Source: Ministeria vibrans ATCC 50519
Taxonomy: Eukaryota; Protista; Filasterea
Assembly (NCBI GenBank): GCA_943704425.1
Contig: CALSCP010002121.1
Location: 106,624-170,623, forward strand
Reading direction: 5' to 3'
Length of the DNA: 64,000 bases
The notes below the pieces were generated by a model. That model saw only the letters and a program-made list of their open reading frames with translations, did no database searches and was not told where the DNA came from. The position numbers and the translations under genes were made by a program. Positions 4,676 to 54,199 of this stretch are shown here, piece after piece (within the stretch, counting starts at the first letter, position 1; every line of letters starts with the position of its first letter).

Positions 4676-4863
4676 TCACTTGACAAGATGAGCTAAACAA
4701 AAAAAGATGCACCAGTCAGACACAACGCAAAATGTGAGGCTGTATCTTACATTTACGAGGCATTGCAAGAGACTGCTCGTCGGCAATGGTGACATCATGG
4801 ATGCGCTCACGGAACTTGTACCGCACGCGCAACTGCAACAACATGACAAAATGGAGTGAACAC

Positions 4864-4952
<89 letters not shown>

Positions 4953-7559
4953 CAAAGTGATAGAGAAAGAAACAAAGTGATAGAGAGAGAGAGAACAAAG
5001 TGATAGAGAAAGAAAGAAAACGAAAGAGAGAACAAAGTGATAGAGGGAGAAAGATAGAACAAAGTGATAAAGAGATATAAAAAAGAGATACAAAGTGATA
5101 GAGAGAGAATAGTGAACAAAGCGCACATCTTACTTGTTTGTCGCGACTGGGCATTGGGTCGTAGAAGCCGACCAATTGAGACTTGGGACCGGCGGGGAGC
5201 TGCAATACGCTGTCGCGCACCAGCATTTGGAGGGGAACGGTAACGTCAACGACCTCGGGCGTAGGTGTATGCTGGGCGCCCGCGCCGTCGGTGTCGTCGT
5301 CCTCGTTGACGAGCAGCACACCATACCACGCAGCAAGGACAACTAACCCACTGCGTTCCTCCTCGACCTCTATCCGCCGCGCCACTGCTTCCGCCATCAG
5401 CCCCACTGCAGACTCTGCCTCCGCCTTGGCCAGGGCAATCTGCTCTCGCTCGGCCTTGGCGGCGGCCTCTCTGCGCTCCCGCTCCTGTCTGCGCCGGTTA
5501 GGGATCATAATCCACCGGTGCGCCAGGTACGCGAGCAGCGCAGGAATCGCCGAGCCCAGAAGCACACTAGGCACCGTGGGCTCGTCGGGCATCAGCCGGA
5601 TCGGCAGCATATACACTTGTCCCATGCGCGCCACACGGATCTTCAGTGTCACGCCCGTCGGCACTCCCAGCGCAAGCGACAGTCCCACGCGTGTTCCTTC
5701 GCTCACCTAACCATATTCGACACAAATTATACAATATTATTATAATTATAATTATTCTGTTATTATATATATATAATAATAATAATAATTATTATAATTA
5801 TATAATTATAATAATTAATATCATATAATATATAATAATAATTATAATTATATATATCTGTGTGGTGTACCAGTCTATCTGCTCCGTATTCCACCGCCCA
5901 GCCACTCAGCGTCAGTTTCCCACTCAGCCGCGCATTCATCACAGTGCTCACTGGCACTGCAATCGTACTCGACACTGAAAAAGGTTTGCGTGGCGCAATG
6001 TCAAACGCGCCCGTGAGCTGCACTCCATTCTCAAACGCACGCACAGTCGACACAGTCATTCCAGAATTGCCGCCCCACTAATGGAATAATAAAAATATAT
6101 TAATATAATAGTCAGGGAGAGGGTTAGTGCGCATGGCGTGACGGTCGCACGTACCTTCCATGACACATACGACATTGTTGACTTGGTGAGCTGGCGCCCC
6201 ACTGTCAGTGCACCCGCTGGTCGTGCGCCCATTTCATTGACATGTAGAGTCACAGATTTGGTGATAAACCTACATTGAACAATTGTGCAGGTGTTACTGC
6301 CAAACTCAAAACTCTCTCTTTATACAATCTCTCTCTCTTTTTACGTGTGCTTGTTAAACTGATGGTACATCTTTCCCGTAATCTGCGTCGTCGATCCAAT
6401 CGTCACTTCAGCCTATCACCAAAACATGATTTTATCAGAGCTACTCTCGGTCTTTCATCAGAGCTATTCTCTGTCTCGCTCCATCTCTCTGCCTTGCTCG
6501 ATCGCCTCTCTCTACACTTACTGCAACATTGGACGCATTTCCAATCTGACGTTTGACGGCTGCGGTCAATGTGCCCCCGCCACTTCCATCTTGCGAGACC
6601 AACAGCCCACTCAGTGTCAGTGTGTCGTGTTCACTCAATTCCGTCTAAATAGAGTGTGTTCAATAACAAAAAGAGAGTGCTCGGTCATGTTGTTCATGTT
6701 ATTTTGATTACCTCCACACTCTGTTGGAAACTCATCCGTTCCACTCGCATCTCCTGAGCCTGTGGAATGGACGCTGCAAAGGCGTTCGTCGCGTCCACTT
6801 GAAACACAACCATTCCCTAGAAAAGTTGATAAAGACACACGCAGCGTTTGATGGCTCGATTTCCTCACTCCTCCGCCTTACCCTCGCTTGCGAAATACGC
6901 TGCATCCGTTGCATCTTTCGCTTGTACGCAAGCTTCTCAAACTCCCTGACAATGTCGTCGGCTGTCGTCAGGTGCGGCCCCAGCTCACAGCCAGCGTCGA
7001 GACCGCGCTGGCCATACAGGTCGTAGATGGTGCGCTGCTGCGAGTCGCTCAGCACCTCAAAGGCACGCTGCACGCGCGAAAACTGCGCCTGAGCTGCCGC
7101 CTTCTTCTCAGGATTGCCTTGGTGCTTGTCTGGATGGAATTGGACACAGAGACGTCGATAGGACGCCTTGATCTCTTCGTCGGTCGCCTGTGGAACGCAA
7201 CAGCACAGTCAGCTCACAACACCCCCCGTCGATCAACGCACACACGCCCCACTGCAGCAACACTCGTCTCCCGGCCGGGTGCGCGACGCATGTAGAAGGC
7301 GGATGGCCGGGCGAAGCGCAAAAAACGTGACAAAAAGTGTTTCAAAAAACGCCATTGCGCGAAATGTCTCCGCTGAGCCACCCTCCTGCGTCGATGCCAC
7401 CCGGCAGAGCAGCACACAGCATACACACACCCACACACTCACCTCCTTGTCGACTGCGAGCACCATGTAGTAGTTGACGTCCGTGCTGGGCTCGCCCTCG
7501 TCCTCGCCGTCAAAGGCCCCTTCGTCAAAGGGCCCGTCGTCGCCAAAGTCGTCGTCCAT
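4676..7559 (-). CDS. DNAJC11: DnaJ homolog subfamily C member 11-like, multi-exon
   Basis: N-terminal J domain (NYYMVLAV...FHPDKH...RAFEVLSD...YDLYGQRG). C-terminal segments RMGQVYMLPIRL, VVDVTVPLQMLV, GFYDPMP and LRVRYKF...HDVT are typical of DNAJC11. Confidence 0.9.
4867..5108. repeat. (GA)n tract followed by a degenerate ACAAAGTGATAGAGA minisatellite
   Basis: Visible directly; lies in a DNAJC11 intron. Confidence 0.9.
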
Positions 7560-7682: not shown

Positions 7683-10452
7683 CTATACATAACTATCACC
7701 ATTACCACTGCCATTGTCAGGAGGCGCCAGTGTCACGCGAGGTTCACCCGAAATTTGCGCATTGTCAGTCGTGTCCGCTGAGCCATGGAACACGCCTGAG
7801 GCAGAGAAGACATCGTCGTACGCAGGCAACCCATCAGGATCGTCTTCACCGACGTCGCCCATGGGTAAGGCAGCTGGGGTAGACGATGTGGGAGGCGCAG
7901 GCGACAAAATTACGGTCGCAACGGGTGTAGCCGTGGCTGAGGCTGACGCGGCTGCGGAAGAAGGTGAAGACAAGGCTCCAGGAAGCAAAACAGGGGCAAA
8001 GTGAGGAGAGAAGACGGGATTGACAAAGCCAGCGCCATCGGGACACGCCTGCTCGTAGGTGGGTGGGCCATCGGAGGCATGTGGCGGGGCCAGTAAACCC
8101 CCACCGACGGGCGTGAGGTGCTCGTTGTTGCCGTCAGCGCCGACGAGACGAAGTCCGTCGCGCTGCTGCCGAAGACGGTAGCGTGCCGAGCGGCGTTGCA
8201 TGTAGCCACCAACAGCAGCAATGACAAAGAGGAGCCCGCCAACGCAGAACATGCTGATAAAGACAATGAGGCCAATGGAAAGGGAGAAGGGCGAGGTGCG
8301 TCGCGACGGGTTGTTCGCGCCACCGCCGTCAAGGCTACCCTGCGCCTGGGCACAGGTGTCCCCCGTGAACGAACTGGTGCAGGCGCACTGAAAGTCAGCG
8401 ACAGTTGCGGAGGACATGTCGGGCGACGAGTACTGCAGATCGATGACGACAACGGGCGACAGACACACGCCATTGTCGACCTGCGTCGAGAAGGACACGC
8501 TGATGTCGACCGAGCCGTGCGTGTACCACTGCAGCAGAATGGACTGCGTGACAGGGATGATGTCGACGCGCGTGGCACAGTCGGAACCACCTGCGGCAAA
8601 CAGCGTCGACGAAATGCCCAGCGCAGAGACAACAAGCCACTCGGTGGAGGCGCCCAAATCAGCGTTGGATGTGACGCGCAGAACGCCGCCATCGGTGGAC
8701 GGGTTGAGGAGGCCGTCAAACGAGAAGTGGAGTTGGTTGTTCGAATAGGCGTTGGAGCGTGTGATGGAGCGCGCGTAAGGCTCACCAGCAAGGCACGTGC
8801 CAGAGTGAGCACATGGCGTCGACATACATGGGTCCTCCTGATTGCAGGTGGGTCCCACGTTGCCGGCGGAACACACACAGGCAAAGCTGTTCGCGTAGTC
8901 AACGCACGTGCCGCCGCGCTGGCACGGTTGCGACGCACACTCATCAATGTTTGAGTCGCAAAAGATGCCGGTGAAGCCCGCGGCACACACACACGCGACA
9001 AAGTGACGCTGTGTCGTGCCGTCCTCGATGCAAGTGGCACCATGTTGACAGGGAAGCGATGCACACTCGCCGGCAAAAGTCTCGCAGTTCTCGCCAACGT
9101 ACGTAAGCGGACAGCTGCACTGGTACTCGGCAAACGACTGTGTCATGTTCAGCGAGGCCGTGAGGGTGGGTGCTGCACACACGCCCGCATCGACAATGGA
9201 GGAAAAGGTGAAGAGTAGCTCAAAGGGCGCACCCTTGACACCTGCTTGCATGGCCAGCACACTGGCCGCCGGAATTAGCAGTGTCTCTTCGCGTTGCGCG
9301 CAGTCACTGGCACTGCTAGCAAACAGCTGCGCACTGAAAATCCCCCCAAAGGTGGCAGCGTCGCGCACATCGACAAACTCGGTAGGTGCGCCCAAATCTG
9401 CTATGGTGCTCACAACAAGTTTGGCGGGGGGTTCGGTGCTCGGAACCGGATTAACAATGAAGCCGCTGAAGATGGCGCGCAAGGTTGACGGGTAGTAGAC
9501 ATTCGAGGAGAAGGTGACGGACTCGAAAAAGTTGCGACGTTCAAGAAAGCACGAGGCGCCATTGCTACAGGGCGACGACGAGCAGCCGTCAAAAGTTTCG
9601 CAAAGCGCACCATACGTGTCGGGAGGACATTCACAGGCAAATGAGGCAACGCCCGTCGAGTTGTTGCAGGTACCGCCGTTGATGCAAGGCGACGACGCAC
9701 ACTCGTCGATGTCTTCAAGGCAGTGGTCGCCCCGGTAGCCCGCCGAACAGTCGCACGTGTATCCGCTCACATGATCGTGGCAGGTGGCGCCATTGAAACA
9801 CGGAGAAGAGAGGCACTAAAGTAAAAAGGAGTATAAGTCGAAAAATAAATGAAGTGTCTCAATCAGTTTGTGCATATGTACTTCGTCCAGGTCGGTTTCA
9901 CAGAGGGGCCCAGTGGTACCGGGGATACAGGTGCAGTTGGTGAAGGCGCGGGTGACGGGGTCTTCGGTGCAGTTTCCATCGTAGAAGCACTCAATAGCGG
10001 CACACTCGCCCAGGTACGTCTCGCACGCCAGTCCCGAGTACGTTGGTGGACACTGGCATGAGTGGCCCTCAGGATCCAGGTTGTACGCAAACTCGCTAAG
10101 ATGTATGTATATATAATTATACATAATTATTATATATATATGTGAGTGTAAAGAACAAAGGACAATGGTACGGGGATCAGGTTTGACAGTCGGTGACATT
10201 TAAAGAGACGGCATGGGTGTACCATGAGAGAAAAGGAGCGGCGCAGACAAAGTCATTGACGTTGTTGGTGAAGGAGATTTCAAGAGTGAGAACACCTGTG
10301 CCATCGGTGCGATAGAGCGATTGAAGTTGGGCAATAGAGAGAGAAATGGAGGCAGAGAGGGTGTTGCAGTCGAATGTAGTCGACGAGAAGAGCACTTGGG
10401 TGATACCCAGTGCCGGTATTTCCACAAGCATATACTGTAAATCAATAATAAC

Positions 10453-10513
<61 letters not shown>

Positions 10514-12596
10514 GAGAGAGAGAGAGAGCGAAACAAAATGACGGAGAGAGAGAGAGAGAAAGAGAAAGAAGAGAAAGAAAGTGACAGAGAGAAAAATTGA
10601 TAGTGAGAGAGAAAGAGAGAGAAAATAAAAAGAATCGGAATCAGTAAAACTATCAGACGCACACATACATATACACACGGTGTATACCTCGGTGGAAAGG
10701 CCAAAATCCGCTACTGTGGAGAAAGAGAGCAGACCACCAGTGACGGGAAAGGCTCCAATGGGGTAGGAGAAGGTAGGCGTCTGAGGAGCGAATACGAGGG
10801 TGGTCGTGATGGTCTGGCTGGTGACGGCCAAAGCGGTGCACGAACCGCCGTTGCTGCAGGGTGACGAAACGCAGTAGTCGATGTCATGGCAGGTAAGCCC
10901 TGTGAAACCTGTGGGACAAAGACAGGTAAACCGGTTGCGCGACGACACACATGTGCTGTTGTTGCTGCACGGCGATGATGCGCACTACAAGGAAAATGAG
11001 TTTCACGCGCAGGTTAAGGGATGTAGACGAGTGCAACGGCGCCGTACCATATCGATCATAGACTCGCAGTGGTCGCCTGTGATACCCGCAAGACAGACGC
11101 ATGAGAATGTGTCTAGATTAGACGAGTGCATGCATGTGCCGTTGTTCAGACACGGAAATGAGTCACACTGAAAGAAATGCACAAAAAAGAGAGCACAAAC
11201 AAAGTATTAGTATTAGTATATAAAAGGGATCGACTTTTTGTTGAATACTTCGTTGATGTCTGTTTCGCAGAAGAGGCCGGTCGAGCCGGGAGGGCAGACA
11301 CAAAAGGCGTCGGTGCCGTTGGCGTGTGTCTCGTTGCAGGTGCCGCCGCGCAAACAGGGCGCGGACGCACAGTCGCCAAGGAACGTCTCGCACAGGGCTC
11401 CCGAGTAGAAGATGGAGCAGGAACAAAAGATGGGGGGCACAGGGGAAGTTGAGCCGGCAATGGTGAGCGTGATAGTGAGGTAGGGGTTGGTGCAGAACGA
11501 GTTGACGGCGACAGCGAAAGAGGCGCGCAGGGCCACCACGGCCGACGACGAGCGAATGCGTCGGATATCATCGGTGGTCAGCGTTAAAGTGGATGTCTGT
11601 TGTGAGCAATCGTTGCCGGAATTGACAAAGAAACGTTGCGAGAAAGTCGGGTCGGCGATGGACACGACATCAATGTATTCAGTGTCCGCCGACAGGTCGG
11701 TGTTTGTCACGAGTGTGAGTGTGCCGCCCTGGGATGGAGGAGGCACGTTCAAAAAGGAATATTCTAAAATGCTCGGGTAGTGAGCTGGTTGTTCCCTAAG
11801 ATTGCAAGACGAATATTAATAACAATACTGACGATGTTGTTTATAGCAAAACATACGTGAGATCCGATGAATAAAATGTCGAAGCGCGACATTCGTTGCC
11901 ATTTTGGCAGGGCGACGACAAACAGTCGATTACGGTGGCGCAGTGGGCGCCGGTGAAGCCTGCGGGGCAGGTGCAGAAGGAGGAGTTGGACGAGAAGTCG
12001 CAAGAGCCGAGTCCACCGCAATAGAGAGTGCTGCAGTCGTCGGTAATGGTCTCGCAGAGAGGCCCGGTTGTTCCTGGGAGACAGTTGCACTGGGCGGGAC
12101 TCACGAGAGACTCGTTGTAGGCGAGTGTCATCTGGATGGGGGCGCACAGCAGGCCCGTCATATTCCGTGGGAAAGTCACGTCGAGCGAGACGGAACCGTC
12201 CAGAATCCACTGTGCGAGAGTAGCCTCAGCAACGTCGATGGCCACCACAGTCAAGGAGCAGTTGTCGCTGTCGATGGCAAGGAGGGCGTTGCGGTGCAGC
12301 AGCGGCGCCGTCACATTGACGTGGTACGACTCGTTCCCACGCAAAGCGTCCAAAATAGAGAGGGTCAGTTTCGCAACGGTGCCCTCGACGTTTGAGTAGG
12401 AGGTGTTGGCTGGCGTGGGCAGGGCGACTGTGACGCCGAACGTGAAGCCGTCGTTGTCCGACAAAGATTCGCCCAGTGAAACGTCTCTCTCCTCCGTCAC
12501 CCCACACGACGCTCCGTTGAGGCACGCAGCGGCACCGCAGCCTGCATAGCCGCCTGTAGCATACATTAGTATGCTTGCCACGGTGAGCAGCAGCAT
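7683..12596 (-). CDS. Type I membrane protein (~1420 aa): signal peptide, 14 Notch-type EGF modules (5 split by an inserted domain), transmembrane helix, PY/PDZ-motif tail
   Basis: Exons 12596-11857, 11795-11249, 11167-11048, 10984-10688, 10434-10223, 10095-9882 and 9815-7683 join in frame (4263 nt). Calcium-binding EGF starts such as DIDEC and NIDEC. Hydrophobic TM at ~8200-8285. Confidence 0.85.
10444..10512. repeat. Intronic (TAA)n microsatellite
   Basis: Visible directly. Confidence 0.97.
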
Positions 12597-12761
12597 AAAT
12601 GAAAAAGGAAATGTGGGACGAGAGACCGATTGGGAGATAAGAGAAAGAATGATTGAGTTTCGATCTGACATAGTCATCTTCATACTTCATCTGTCTGTTG
12701 TCTCTTGTGACACTGTGACTTGTGACTTGTCTCTTGCTGTCATTTTTTTTTTTTTACATCA

Positions 12762-13013
12762 ATGATGGACGATCGATACAGCGAGGCGGACGAGGATGAG
12801 GTGATTCACGAGGCGGAGTTGCCGCTGCCGTCGAGCCAACGGGTCGTGTTCTCGTTTGGCTTTGGCAATCGAATGGCCATTGCTAATAGTACAGGCGGCG
12901 CGTCCACACTGGCTCTTGTGGAATGGGACGACGAAGGGTTCCACTCCACCGAGGTAGGAAGCAACCACGCTGATCCGCATCGAGACAAAATGTCTGTCTC
13001 AAAAATTTATAAC

Positions 13014-46961: not shown

Positions 46962-48485
46962 ATGAACCAGAGACGTAGGACGAATTGGGTCGAGAGTGAC
47001 GACGAGATGGAAACGCCGGTGGCGTCGCGAGCGTTGGCGGAGACGGTCGCGGCGCAAGAATGGCCGCGGTCGCTCTTTCTGCGCAACTGGGCCGCCTTCT
47101 TCCTGCTGGGCACCATCAACAACCTGGCGTATGTGGTGGTGAATTCGAGTGCCGAGTCGCTGTCCGACTCGTTCTTCGCTTCGAACCTTCTCGGACTCAT
47201 TCCGTGGGCCAACGTCGGCTTTGGCTTTGTCGCGCGCGCAGTCGCGACTGGATTACGCGACGTGGCCCCTTACCCTGTGCGTTTCTTCATGACTGGATCC
47301 ATTCTCCTCGTGGGTCTGCTCATGCTGTCGTTTGCGCCCTCTTTCGGCCTGGTCATCGCTTCCATTGTTGTCTGTGGCTTTTCGTCCAGCTTCGGCGAGT
47401 CCGTCACCCTCGGCTACTTGCGCCTGTTTCCTCCCGAGCTCGTGAATGCCTGGTCAAGTGGCACGGGAATGGCCGGTGTTGCCGGTAGTGCTCTGTATCT
47501 TCTTCTTTCTGGTATGGGCATGACCAATCGTCAGGTGTTTCTCTTCTCATTGCCCAGCGTCGCGCTCTACTGGTTGACATACGTTGTCATTGTCAAGCGG
47601 TCAGATGGCAGTGAAATTCGCGCGGAGACCGATGAACGGGAAGCATTACTGGATCGTGCTGCTATCGACGCGGTTGTACAGGCGGATGACGACGCCAACG
47701 GTAGTCAAGAGGACGACTCCGTGTCTCAGGCGCCCTCGATGACCACGACGCTAGCCAAAGCGACCAAGTTTCCAACCGAATCGTCCTTTAAGCGCTACAT
47801 GCGTTGTACACGCCTTGTCCTTGGTGTATCATGTCAGCTTGCCGCAGTGTACTTCTTCGAGTATGTCATTTCATCAGGATTGAGTGCGAAGGTGAGAAGA
47901 AAAGGATTCTATTGTTACAAACATATACACTTTCACCTGTTCCCTCACTTACACACACACACGCACGCACGCACACACTTACCTTTAATATAGGTGTTGA
48001 CTGCACAACAGCAACAGAGCAAATCATACGTATATGTACATGCGTATGCGCTGCTATCTTTCTGCTACCAGGCAGGCGTCTTTGTATCACGCTCATCCCT
48101 TCAACTGCTCCACATCCACCGCATCTCCATTCTGACGCTTCTCCAAGCAGCCAATTTTGTTCTTTGGATGGTCGACGCTCACTACCGCTTTCTGCCTATT
48201 GGCGCACTTCTTCCCCTCATGGTCTTTGTGGGGCTCTTGGGCGGTGCAATGTATGTCAACGTCTTCTATCTTGTCCTTAACGACCCAGTACGAATCATTT
48301 TGTTATTCTTTTCCTGCTCTTCTCTCTCCTCGTCTTCTTCACCTCAACAATATGTCTCTGTCACGCAGGATATTGCCAATGAAGACCGTGAGTTATGCAT
48401 CAACATTGTTGCGTTTGCCATCACCATTGGCATTACCCTTGGCTGTGCTGCAATCCTTCTGTTCGACAACACCTTCCTCAAGTAA
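46962..48485 (+). CDS. CLN3: Battenin / CLN3 (Btn1) lysosomal membrane protein
   Basis: Motifs FFLLGTINN, SSFGESVTL, WSSGTGMAG, VYFFEYVI, YQAGVFVSRSS, GLLGGAMYVN and EDRELC. Confidence 0.93.
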
Positions 48486-49127: not shown

Positions 49128-52100
49128 TCATCTAAGAAAGCCATACAAAGTTAGAACGAAGAAACAAAGAGAGAGACTCAAACAAAACAAATAATCGTTT
49201 AATTCAGATTGGAAGCATCAACAGAGACTCTGCATACACAGAACCTTATGACATATGCTTGTCATTTTGTGCCCTCACTCGAGCAACTCATCATAATAAC
49301 GCGCACAGAGAAGACAGAGAAGAGAAAAAGCGAGACAAAAAATAATTGCTTACTCGGAGTGGAAAAGAGCAGAAATGGTGCGCACAAGCTGAGCACGCTT
49401 GTGTGCAATGACGTGGGCGCGGAGGACCGCATTGTTACACTCGTTGAGGTCCTTATCACCGAGCGTCTTGACCAGATGGGCGCCAATGTAGCGAAGATGA
49501 TGCGACAACTGGGTATGCTTGTGTTTGGTGTCGTGGCGCACAAGGGCACTCGAGAGATACTCGAGCATGGGAAGATCGTACATGAAAGAAGATACAATGT
49601 GCGTGACGGCACTTGAATTGTTGAAGGCATTCGAGGCGTGCAGTGAGGCGGGGAGCGCAGATGATGGCGACGGGTCAACATACACTTGGCAGAGACGCAA
49701 CATGGCCGACGAGAGAATGCGAAAGGCAAGGGTGTAGTCGGGCGAGGGCAGCAGCTGACAGGTGGCCACGGCAAGCATGTGGGCACCTTTAGTTTGCAAA
49801 CAGCGCACCAGTCGACGCACAACCAGTGTGTCGAATGCGACGGTCGGCACAGGTGCGCCATTCTGTGCAGGGGTGTTCGAGGCAAAGGTAGAGGCGGCGA
49901 CCGCAACACTTTTGTCGGACCACACTGACATGGATAAGACGGCACTGTAATGACGGGCGGCGTCGTAGTATTCACGCGCCTGGAAGCGCCTGTGTCCCGC
50001 ACGCACACGCCACTCGGCCTGGTGCGGCCACAGATCGCTCCAAGCACGCTCCAACAGCTTGTCACATAGTTGAGCACAAGCAGGTACCAGAGGTGCCGGC
50101 ACCACGGTAGAGTTGGGCTCAACGGCGGTGTCGCTTGCAGTTGGCTCCTTTGACTCGGCCGCCGGATAGCGGTGGTTTTCAATGTCACCGCTTGTTCCAC
50201 TGGCGGGAGCCTTGGCGACTGCGAGAACAAGGCACGAGCACAACGACGCAATACAATCGGGATTGTTGAGGCCTTCAAGGCAGAGGAGTGCAGCACGCGA
50301 CACACCACACATGCCAGTGTGCAACGTTGTCGAGGCGGCCGCACCCAAAGCATCCGACGCAGACGATTCTTCGCCCGCGGCGGCTGCGCGTCCACGACGC
50401 CGTGATTCGGTCTTGTTGTGCACACCATAGAAGAGTTGGGCGACGACTGCGTGTGCCACTCGCACCGGAGGCAACACCGATGTGGTGGTGACGACTGCGG
50501 AGCCGGTGTGGATCATAGGCACAAGCGCATTGCACAAGCTTGCCATTCCACCGTCATTTGAGCACCTAGTAAAACAAAGAAAAAGCAAAAGAAAATAATT
50601 AGTATTGAAAATATTCAAGTTTTTTTTTTTTTTTTTTTTTTTGTTACGTTCGATGTGCGTGAGCAAAAACACGCGCAAGAGCACAGACGTTCTTGTAAAG
50701 TTGTCCATGTTCACTGCGAAACAGACCTTCGTTAAGAAGACGAAGCATGATAGAGTCACAGAGGTGAACGTCAGGGACGATGGCGACGCCCGGCAATGAG
50801 TTGAGCAGGCGAGGGAGATCGTCTGATGAAGCAACGGCAATTTCGTGAAAGGACACGAGCAAACGGTAGAGGTCACGTTGAGGATGTTGTTGAGTTGTTT
50901 CGCCCTGCAAATCGGATAGGATACGACGGGCGGCTACAGTGAAACGAGAGCATCGCCAGACGCGCGACAGACGGAGAAGACAGAGTAAGACGCGCTGCCA
51001 AGGTTGAGACACGTCCAGTAGCAGGGGAATCCAGCTGTGAGCTGGCGGTGGATTCGACGCATCTGCAGTTCCATCTACGTTTGTGGCGACGGCCGCTTGA
51101 TTTTCATACAACACAGCGAGTTCAACACCTGGAACGACGGAATCGCCTGCTACGCGATCACCGGCAAGCAAGGAACGCGCGGCATGAATAACTTGAGCGG
51201 GGTCACGCTCAGTCTGAAGCGTGTGCAGACAAGCGGCAACCGTAGTGCATGGATCGCTGTTGGTCGGGGATGTCGAGTGAGAGGCAATGTCGTGGATGGG
51301 AACGTCGCCAGAGGACGAACTGGCTGCCAGACAATGGATTGCAAGGCGCAGTTCGGGGGTGTCGATACGCTCGACAATGCGTTGTGACCAAAGACGAAGA
51401 CGCTCCATAACGGTTGGACGAAAGAAGATAGGAGCGGCAGAGAGTGAAGTGACGTGACGGGAAAGCGAATCGGCAAGGGTATCGAGTGCTTCGGCGGGGT
51501 GACGGCGAAGTGCGGAGCAAGCCAAGTCGGCAGCGTTGACGGGAGCACCTTGCATTGCTACGAGAATGCTGTTAAGCGCAATAAGTTGCGATGCAAGAGC
51601 AACGGTGAGGCCAAGGTCGTGCGGCACGGCCTGCCGGTAGGGCAGGGAGAGGGAGGAAGATGGATGAAAGGGATTTTCTAAAAGTGCCAGCGAGTAAGAG
51701 GAGAGTCTGATGGCGGTGTCCTCGAAGAAAAGCTCGCACAGCTTCGGGGAGTGTGCCGCTACGAGGTGTTGACACAGTTCCATCGGACTTGCATCACCCG
51801 AGGCGACACCTGGCTGTGGAGTCGTATTGGCAAGGGCATGGCATGCGCGGGTGTAGCCGGCGAGCACATCGCTACTTTCGTCGGACGCGTCACAATCATG
51901 AGCAAGTGCAAACCAAGACAAGGCGGAGGCGTGATCACCGCGCAAAAAGAGTAGCTGAGCAACGTCAATGATAGCCTGGCGGCGCAATGGAGGGGGTAAT
52001 TGTTGTGAGGAACGGGCGTGGTCGGTGACAAACGCGAGGCTCTCGGCGTCGTCGGCAGGAACAGTGAGGCGCGTCAGAAAAGCACGATCGGCGCGTGTTG

Positions 52101-52999: not shown

Positions 53000-53094
53000 A
53001 TGGTATCGAGTTGAAATAAAATAATAAGCTGATTGATCATTGAATTGAATTCATGTGCTGTGAATTGTCTCATATTTTGTTGACCTTTGCCAAC

Positions 53095-54199
53095 ATGAAT
53101 CATTCATGCAGAAAGTGTGGAGCCAAACCGAAAGTTTTGCATCTGTGTGGTAACTGTGAGGCGGTTATGTACTGCGACGAAAAGTGTCAGCGGGCGGACT
53201 GGGCGAACCACCGGGGGCCGTGCAAAGCAAGGGTGGCGGCAGTGAAGGAGGCAAAGCGGACTGAGCTCAATACTCAGCGAGTACTGGATCATTACCGCCA
53301 GGCTCCCGAAGAGTTTGACAAAATGGTGCCTGCCTCGTGGAAGATGGCGGAGAGCGACGACGAGGATGACGACGAGGATGCAAGTGGCGTAAAACAGTCA
53401 GTGTCGGCCGAGACGAAGCAACCGTTGCACATCGAGGTGGAGTCGCAAGGAGAGGGCGACGCACACGCACATGCACACGCAACGGAGGAGGTGGATCGAC
53501 CACGGATGTCGCTGTATCGTCTTGAAACACCCTCCGTGTTTGTGTCGCGTATTCATGCGAGTCCGACCGAGACGCTTTCCGACTCGTTTACCGCAGTCGA
53601 AGGCGGCAGTAAGCCAGCCAAAGTAGCATCGACTCGGCCCGACAAGTTGCGAGTGTCTGTGTTCATGCCAAAGACACGCGGTGCGTCGTGTGTTCACAAC
53701 GTGTACATTCGCGACGAGCGTCGTCTGACGGTCGAGGCAAATGGCTACCTGCTCGAGGAGTACACGCTGCCTTACGACGTGGAAAGCAGCACGATGGGGT
53801 TGAAGTATGTTAAGGACAAGCACAAGCTTGTGGTTGAACTGAAGGTGTGTCAACCCGACGTGGCGATGGAGACGGGGATAGCGCCGATGCACGTGGAGGA
53901 CAACGCGGATGGGGGCAACGGGACGTGTGATGAGAGTTGTGACAAGGAAGATGTGGAATTGGTAGAAGAAGAGGCAGTGAAGAGTTTGACGAAGAAGGCG
54001 CTGACGAGTGAGGCGATTGTTCCGGCGTTTGAGTTGGGTCAAACGAACGACATGTTGACCATTGTCATTTGTGTGAGTGCGATTCATGCAGCGTCTGTGA
54101 CTGCTGTTGTCATGGGACAGGCAAGAAGAGAGAGAAAGTGTGTGTGTGTTAGTGTGAGTGTTAGTGTTAGTGTTAGTGAGTGAGTGTTAGTGTTAGTGA

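Follow-up and report, generated by a model that had tools for sequence, protein, structure and literature searches.

The filasterean Ministeria vibrans ATCC 50519 encodes a large membrane protein in which some of the epidermal growth factor (EGF) modules are interrupted by a domain of a kind found in giant surface proteins of bacteria. The gene lies on the minus strand at 7683..12683 of the stretch of DNA analysed here (hereafter the window), which comprises 64,000 nucleotides (nt) of contig CALSCP010002121.1 in assembly GCA_943704425.1, positions 106,624 to 170,623. Its product is a type I membrane receptor with 14 EGF modules, nine of them intact and five apparently opened between their third and fourth cysteines (Cys3 and Cys4) to hold a predicted beta-sandwich. 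We consider it probable that this is a multivalent receptor for adhesion or uptake, in which five bacterial-type binding sandwiches are nested in a rod of EGFs. What is new here is the nesting of the domain inside canonical EGFs in a eukaryote; the domain itself, which the first-pass annotation of this DNA (made from the sequence alone) did not recognise and saw as part of a candidate new receptor family, is already widespread in bacterial proteins.

The gene was read as a single unit from open reading frames (ORFs) and their translations, by joining six reading-frame pieces across introns whose borders, as read from the sequence, have GTA(C/T) donors and AG acceptors. The exons total 4350 nt and keep the frame, giving a product of 1449 amino acids (aa) from a start at 12683, and the last of them, 2.1 kb long and open throughout, holds a 695-aa ORF. 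A metagenome scaffold, L001, that is 98.96% identical to the window over 1244 nt has a 7-nt indel at 12648, and because this would shift the frame of a protein begun at 12683 the start is taken to be 12596; the ATG there is probably the true one, with a product of about 1420 aa, and a hydrophobic stretch followed by G-Y-A-G precedes the first cysteine. Beyond 12596 the coding sequences of window and scaffold show three synonymous and no non-synonymous differences, which, together with the maintained frame, marks the receptor gene as a real one under constraint. The scaffold further places this strain, or a sister strain, in the SCHR19-1 metagenome series. At the N-terminus a signal peptide is followed by split EGF 1; one, three, three and two intact EGFs then separate the successive split modules up to split EGF 5, after which come a transmembrane helix and a tail of about 170 aa, on which no Pfam domain was matched.

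In the minus-strand translation the five split units read C-x4-C-x5-C, insert, C-x-C-x8-C, with inserts of 135-143 aa (138, 143 and 135 aa in copies 1, 4 and 5, each of which lies inside one exon). The cysteine spacing and flanking conserved residues of the halves are identical to those of the intact EGFs, the usual glycine and aromatic positions being kept, and because each half holds three cysteines neither can be fully paired alone. What the halves match is complementary. When PDB sequences were searched with the profile, the N half (profile positions 3-17) aligned with the beginning of the EGFs of factor VII/IX and Notch and the C half (positions 142-159) with residues 22-39 of Notch EGFs, while in copy 5 Pfam assigns the N half to positions 1-15 of the EGF model and the C half to positions 13-28 of the tenascin-EGF model. 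With its halves about 135 aa apart, copy 5 as a whole sequence scores 16.3 bits for EGF (PF00008) against a gathering cut-off of 21.5. When the insert was excised by a local script from the three copies contained in single exons, the rejoined EGFs 1, 4 and 5 scored 25-29 bits against a hidden Markov model (HMM) of the nine intact EGFs, which themselves score 17-42 bits when left out of that HMM one at a time. Copies 2 and 3 were analysed as exon pieces, with the intron-split codons (exon 1/2 and exon 5/6) left out.

Structure prediction gives a compatible picture. An AlphaFold2 model of split EGF 4 with an intact EGF on either side (256 residues) has a mean predicted local distance difference test score (pLDDT) of 84, with no residue below 50 and the split module at 73-86. 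A long strand (54-68) begins at Cys3 and another (183-200) ends at Cys4, a minor hairpin follows Cys4 as in both flanking intact EGFs, and the EGF hairpin is predicted to run on as a ribbon into the sandwich. In Foldseek, Notch EGF triplets align over all 256 residues. Model and sequence matches together support the view that these are EGFs split between Cys3 and Cys4 whose halves would form one EGF. This had been proposed in the first-pass annotation, and it is supported by the half matches, the excision scores and the EGF-like strand pattern of the model that the annotation had asked for; the boundaries it gave for the five units agree with ours to within a few bases. Its observation that one to three intact EGFs alternate with the split ones also holds, the successive counts being 1, 3, 3 and 2, and its idea of a higher-order repeat is modestly supported: behind splits 2, 3 and 4 stands an EGF whose Cys3-Cys4 loop, at 11-12 residues, is the longest and which has a common C-E-T-F/Y-x-G-D/E-C linker, an arrangement that would suit a two-module repeat unit. 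As a separate observation, the sequence C-x-S-x-P/A-C, in animals the consensus at which POGLUT1 O-glucosylates Notch-type EGFs, stands between Cys1 and Cys2 in 11 of the 14 modules, four split ones among them (N halves within 8352-11924), and among PDB sequences the N halves match, besides others, EGF substrates used in studies of this modification.

The inserts are 19-39% identical to copy 4 and share the motif L-x-V-x-S/T-x-A-D-L/F-G-x-x-T-E, then LF...DC, then SF..V....C..P. These motifs had been noticed at first reading, as had the greater divergence of copy 1, which also lacks two otherwise near-invariant acidic residues, Asp45 and Glu51. Counted over 152 domains (148 from the search described below and four window copies), the most conserved positions are Asp45 (95%), Glu51 (93%), Val105 (93%), Gly93 (87%) and Asp92 (80%); the Asp45/Glu51 pair is kept in four of the five window copies and maps, by alignment and predicted structure, to a loop that links strand 3 to strand 4. 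Of a pair of cysteines, both members occur in 76 of these domains and neither in 72, with four exceptions, a pattern as expected of an optional disulfide. The signature of the family can be given as D-L-G/D-x-x-x-E, a D-G after the helix and the optional cysteine pair.

No named family was found to cover the insert. Pfam and NCBIfam gave EGF-type matches only on the exon pieces, and neither NCBIfam nor Pfam searched at E<=10 with window copies and short homologues has a family over the insert; among PDB sequences, in single-sequence and family profile searches, only the EGF halves were matched; PrgK, considered there as a relative at E=1.8, was dismissed as noise. A word-based search with the copy-4 insert in the 695-aa ORF returned no homologue within a length window of 382-1216 aa, a range that leaves out the product of about 1450 aa as well as giant bacterial proteins. 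An unrestricted profile search with an insert-only alignment of the five copies (A3) over 1.84 billion proteins yielded 134 cluster representatives at E<=1e-3, 30 of them at E<=1e-10 and the best at 5e-41. Since the insert HMM matches exactly five places in the window and these independent proteins elsewhere as well, the repeat is not a product of chance.

Nearly all of the 134 representatives are giant bacterial secreted or surface proteins, half of the matches being longer than 1200 aa and 48 longer than 2000 aa. Named relatives comprise S8 peptidases and CARDB-, Ig-like- and choice-of-anchor-D-domain proteins, from Pirellulales, Planctomycetaceae, Planctomycetota and Acidobacteriota, and the domains that co-occur with the homologous region are Peptidase_S8, PPC, RTX, PKD, dockerin, LTD and LRR. 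That region is likewise uncovered by Pfam and NCBIfam in the bacterial proteins, and the PPC matches adjoin it and do not lie on top of it (P0038 and P0042, both S8 subtilases). The insert domain is thus a widespread, unnamed module of giant bacterial surface proteins. To call it unrecognised, as had been done, remains right for Pfam, NCBIfam and PDB sequences, and the HMM and profile search proposed at that time matched no characterised domain in this architecture; it does, however, have many relatives, mostly bacterial. One of these, P0001 (locus L002:3001-7539; GCA_049472375.1, a metagenome-assembled genome), carries nine tandem copies of the domain behind an LRR region. On it the Pfam model YkcB_C, which describes the C-terminal domain found in putative mannosyltransferases, attains 54.7 bits only by summing nine faint repeats. 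YkcB_C was also considered as the family of the insert itself and rejected: it matches two of the 31 sequences in alignment A4, at E of about 0.05, and offers a very remote hint at best. A very remote link is possible by this route and could hint at glycan binding.

For the insert of copy 5, AlphaFold2 predicts, with a pLDDT of about 98, a sandwich of eight strands and one helix. Compared with the PDB in Foldseek, it resembles PorU, the carbohydrate-binding domains of BcsB, a PNGase, CBM36 and Cry domain III, with the P-domain of Kex2 and the collagen-binding domain of ColG as further neighbours; these matches have a probability of about 1.0, E-values of 5e-5 to 4e-3 and template modelling (TM) scores of 0.36-0.46, the query including weakly modelled EGF halves. 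The model supports a two-sheet jelly-roll resembling carbohydrate-binding modules (CBMs) and P-domains, by which a fold class and not a family is meant, and it agrees with the beta-rich jelly-roll that had been anticipated from the sequence. No model for PPC (PF04151), the P-domain (PF01483) or CBMs matched the insert of the window copies or its counterpart in the short homologues from bacteria.

EGF halves surround the domain in only four of the 134 representatives, namely P0002, P0037, P0100 and P0073 (on L001, L003, L004 and L005, respectively), all of which are environmental, eukaryote-like fragments, P0002 being the window's own exon 1 by way of L001. Three of the four scaffolds, L001, L003 and L004, belong to one metagenome series (scaffold names SCHR19-1...) and L005 to an unrelated run, SRR23272272. 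L003, L004 and L005 do not match the window at the DNA level, are similar in G+C content (52-54%) and carry further intact and split EGFs, two split EGFs being adjacent on L004. An EGF N half indicated by a regular expression in P0077 proved to be a false positive, located in a Cys-rich bacterial signal-peptide region. The split-EGF architecture therefore forms a small eukaryotic family, so far found, besides the window, only in unannotated environmental sequence, and a search of the literature on split or interrupted EGFs gave no relevant match for this architecture. On L005 (3-959; 997-1527) one insert scores 42 bits and another, at the same Cys3-Cys4 position, only 3 bits; from so high a divergence it follows that the nested domain evolves fast in some copies.

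In a FastTree phylogeny of 148 domains the six eukaryotic copies fall in one clade, and because the bacterial spread is broad a single transfer into a eukaryote with subsequent internal duplication would be the simplest history. A bacterial origin of the domain, with transfer in that direction, is what the sequences suggest. A wider scenario, which we put forward only tentatively, is that a holozoan lineage captured a bacterial jelly-roll by horizontal transfer, nested it in the Cys3-Cys4 hairpin of an EGF and amplified it, giving rise to new multivalent phagocytic or adhesion receptors and to an independent re-invention of the arrangement in which the L4 domain of laminin lies within an LE module.

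In the receptor as we envisage it, the ectodomain would be a rod of 14 EGFs, with the Cys3-Cys4 hairpin opened in five and each opening occupied by a nested jelly-roll sandwich, some 120-140 aa long and braced by a disulfide. The sandwiches would project sideways and leave the EGF array unbroken, and a single capture of the bacterial module would have been followed by duplication of the split-EGF unit. They are taken as binding modules because of their fold neighbours, the conserved Asp/Glu loop and the adhesin-like or exoenzyme contexts of their bacterial relatives, and the five together would serve as ligand-binding units for particles, prey or matrix in adhesion or uptake. In the tail, the NPxF, PPxY and YxxV motifs (F-V-N-P-V-F, P-P-T-Y and Y-D-D-V) suggest, by analogy with LDLR and CED-1/MEGF10, coupling to adaptors of the endocytic or phagocytic machinery. 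Ligand binding and this cell-biological role are both properties that we infer. For the lectin-like or Ca2+-binding activity and the prey recognition suggested at first reading, the hints are confined to the fold neighbours, the near-invariant Asp45/Glu51 pair and the short motifs of the tail; for carbohydrate or Ca2+ binding in particular, it is the Asp/Glu pair that counts as evidence.

Several points weigh against such a receptor, and other readings of the gene draw on some of them. The fold matches of the insert are generic and indicate no ligand, the position of the Asp45/Glu51 loop in the structure is that of a model, the tail motifs are short and could occur by chance, and the analogous L4 and LF domains of laminin have no known ligand (PMC5338690). 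The sandwiches might instead be non-binding spacers or kinks in an adhesion rod, with any binding carried out by the EGF array, and this would sit well with the loss of the Asp/Glu pair from copy 1 and with the retention of the Notch-type C-x-S-x-P/A-C in most of the EGFs. We regard this as unlikely but as a serious rival, for Asp45 and Glu51, with 93-95% conservation among distant bacteria, persist in four of the five window copies, as a conserved site would, and the bacterial relatives stand in accessory arrays of adhesins or exoenzymes. Where the EGF halves are concerned, the pairing of cysteines 1-3, 2-4 and 5-6 across the insert is conjectural, the first and shorter AlphaFold2 model gave the halves a pLDDT of only 54-66, and single halves fall below the Pfam gathering score for EGF. 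Such low scores might be expected if the flanking cysteines formed no EGF, each half making its own small knot or pairing with a neighbour and the sandwiches standing in series; yet three cysteines per half cannot all pair alone, spacing and conserved residues are exactly as in the intact EGFs, and the second model raises the pLDDT to 73-86 with EGF-like strands and Notch triplets aligned end to end, which makes separate halves improbable. The seven-exon model is our reading of genomic sequence alone and leaves an unpaired cysteine where exons 5 and 6 meet, as might be seen in an artefactual model or a decaying pseudogene. That explanation can hardly be credited when splicing at consistent signals keeps all seven exons in frame, the 2.1-kb last exon is open, the differences from the second isolate are synonymous and paralogous loci have a like architecture. 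As for origin, the eukaryotic clade has a modest support of 0.68, and the profile behind the tree alignment was built from the window copies themselves.

Laminin provides a further rival as well as the precedent that the first-pass annotation had aptly named. L4 is inserted between Cys3 and Cys4 of a laminin LE module (PMC5338690), the identical insertion point, and in laminin and perlecan, as here, a beta-sandwich of about 130-180 aa lies between these cysteines of an EGF-type module while the rod stays continuous. L4 is likewise a CBM-like sandwich, the host is holozoan-like, and perlecan L4+LE structures rank 17-19 in Foldseek for the three-EGF model, a weak fold match obtained only when EGFs are in the query. 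The insert could on these grounds be a highly diverged L4 (Laminin_B) of the laminin/perlecan type and the gene kin to the LE+L4 module of basement membranes. Its host modules, however, are six-cysteine EGFs and not the eight-cysteine LE of laminin; Laminin_B (PF00052) gave no match on the insert at E<=1 to 10, and Laminin_EGF (PF00053) gave no significant one even at E<=10, its single weak match (E=0.054) being on an intact-EGF exon piece. Nor does the family profile find a laminin or perlecan chain among PDB sequences at E<=10, no L4 is among the matches listed by Foldseek for the insert model, and the clear sequence relatives are bacterial. Descent from L4 is therefore quite improbable, and on sequence the split EGFs appear to work topologically like L4 in LE without being members of that group or detectably related to it. 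They differ further in that five nested copies occur in one membrane-anchored type I receptor, whereas laminin and perlecan are secreted matrix proteins.

The proposed adhesion or uptake receptor shares features with three other systems. The insert belongs to the same fold class as bacterial accessory sandwiches (PPC/collagen-binding, P-domain and CBM jelly rolls), and its homologues in S8 subtilases often stand beside PPC, but it has its own signature and is matched by none of the corresponding models. CED-1, Draper and MEGF10 combine an EMI domain with an atypical EGF array, and their tails recruit CED-6/GULP or Syk-type kinases through NPxY and YxxL motifs. By analogy with these and with LDLR-type receptors, the protein is of type I, with an EGF-rich ectodomain, one transmembrane helix, and an F-x-N-P-x-F/Y and a tyrosine-based motif in the tail (N-P-V-F and Y-D-D-V). 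Unlike them it has no EMI or LDLa match in Pfam, the absence of EMI placing it outside the CED-1/Draper/MEGF10 group, and its nested sandwiches have no counterpart there. Notch-type EGFs are the best structural matches for the EGF parts, with which they share the putative O-glucosylation motif and, before several modules, D-x-D/N-E linkers, whereas LNR, NOD and ankyrin matches in Pfam are lacking and the tail is short and domain-free.

Laminin and perlecan have been the main known examples of a globular domain nested in an EGF-type module, and the purpose of the arrangement in them is unexplained. The present gene offers a second, apparently independent case with a different sandwich and a different host module, repeated fivefold in one receptor of an organism near the animal root, and so a simpler system for studying what the nested-domain design is for. 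It has also led to the definition of a sizeable bacterial domain family, unnamed in Pfam and NCBIfam, which now has a confident structural model. If the bacterial origin is true, this would be a clear instance of a prokaryotic binding module built into the holozoan extracellular toolkit.

Table 1. Features of the split-EGF receptor gene, with positions counted in the window
Feature	Position	Strand	Basis or remark
Whole gene, coding span	7683..12683	-	7 exons
Exons 1-4	12683-11857; 11795-11249; 11167-11048; 10984-10688	-	read from sequence
Exons 5-7	10434-10223; 10095-9882; 9815-7683 (stop included in last)	-	read from sequence
Probable start ATG 12596 and signal peptide	12540..12596	-	7-nt indel in scaffold L001; hydrophobic stretch
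Split EGF 1, most diverged	12054..12539 (insert 12090-12503, 138 aa)	-	insert HMM 129 bits
Split EGF 2	11390..11924 (insert 11426-11888; intron 11796-11856)	-	HMM 161 bits, exon-2 part
Split EGF 3	10023..10873 (insert 10059-10837; introns 10435-10687, 10096-10222)	-	HMM 54 + 84 bits, two exon pieces
Split EGF 4	9084..9584 (insert 9120-9548, 143 aa)	-	HMM 157 bits
Split EGF 5, copy nearest membrane	8352..8828 (insert 8388-8792, 135 aa)	-	HMM 178 bits
Transmembrane helix, then Arg-rich stop-transfer stretch	8199..8288	-	read from translation
Cytoplasmic tail, ~170 aa	7686..8198	-	read from translation
Tail motif P-P-T-Y	8055-8066	-	read from translation
Tail motif F-V-N-P-V-F	8010-8027	-	read from translation
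Tail motif L-P-A-Y-D-D-V	7809-7829	-	read from translation

Two details of the third split EGF deserve mention. The exon 5/6 junction (10222-10224 / 10095; TG|GTACAC ... AG|C) creates a cysteine codon by which insert 3 gains a third cysteine that has no partner; copy 3 may be atypical, or else this junction, the least certain one, has been misread. The 253-nt intron at 10435-10687, inside the same insert, consists almost entirely of low-complexity sequence, with CT-rich runs and a long TAT microsatellite whose open frames read as poly-Leu/Ser and poly-Tyr, the other introns being 61-127 nt long.

The receptor gene stands head to head (12596-12800) with a gene for Nup85, whose ORF opens at 12762 on the plus strand and matches the Pfam family from about 107 aa in. 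No more than about 170 nt separate the two start codons, which makes the genome compact and a shared promoter region probable. An Rfam scan of the whole window found no RNA family. Other neighbours encode GARS-AIRS (1396-2961), DNAJC11 (4807-5706), CLN3 (46962-47993), INTS8 (49350-50876) and a MYND-PIH1 protein (53053-54183), and the contig is gene-dense and unlike human DNA, with 46-60% G+C and a gene set of holozoan flavour. The best matches of CLN3 are an Opistho-2 entry, which we take to be the filasterean Pigoraptor (40%), Capsaspora (38%) and entries resembling choanoflagellate transcriptomes (about 45%), while Nup85 matches animal sequences at about 30%.

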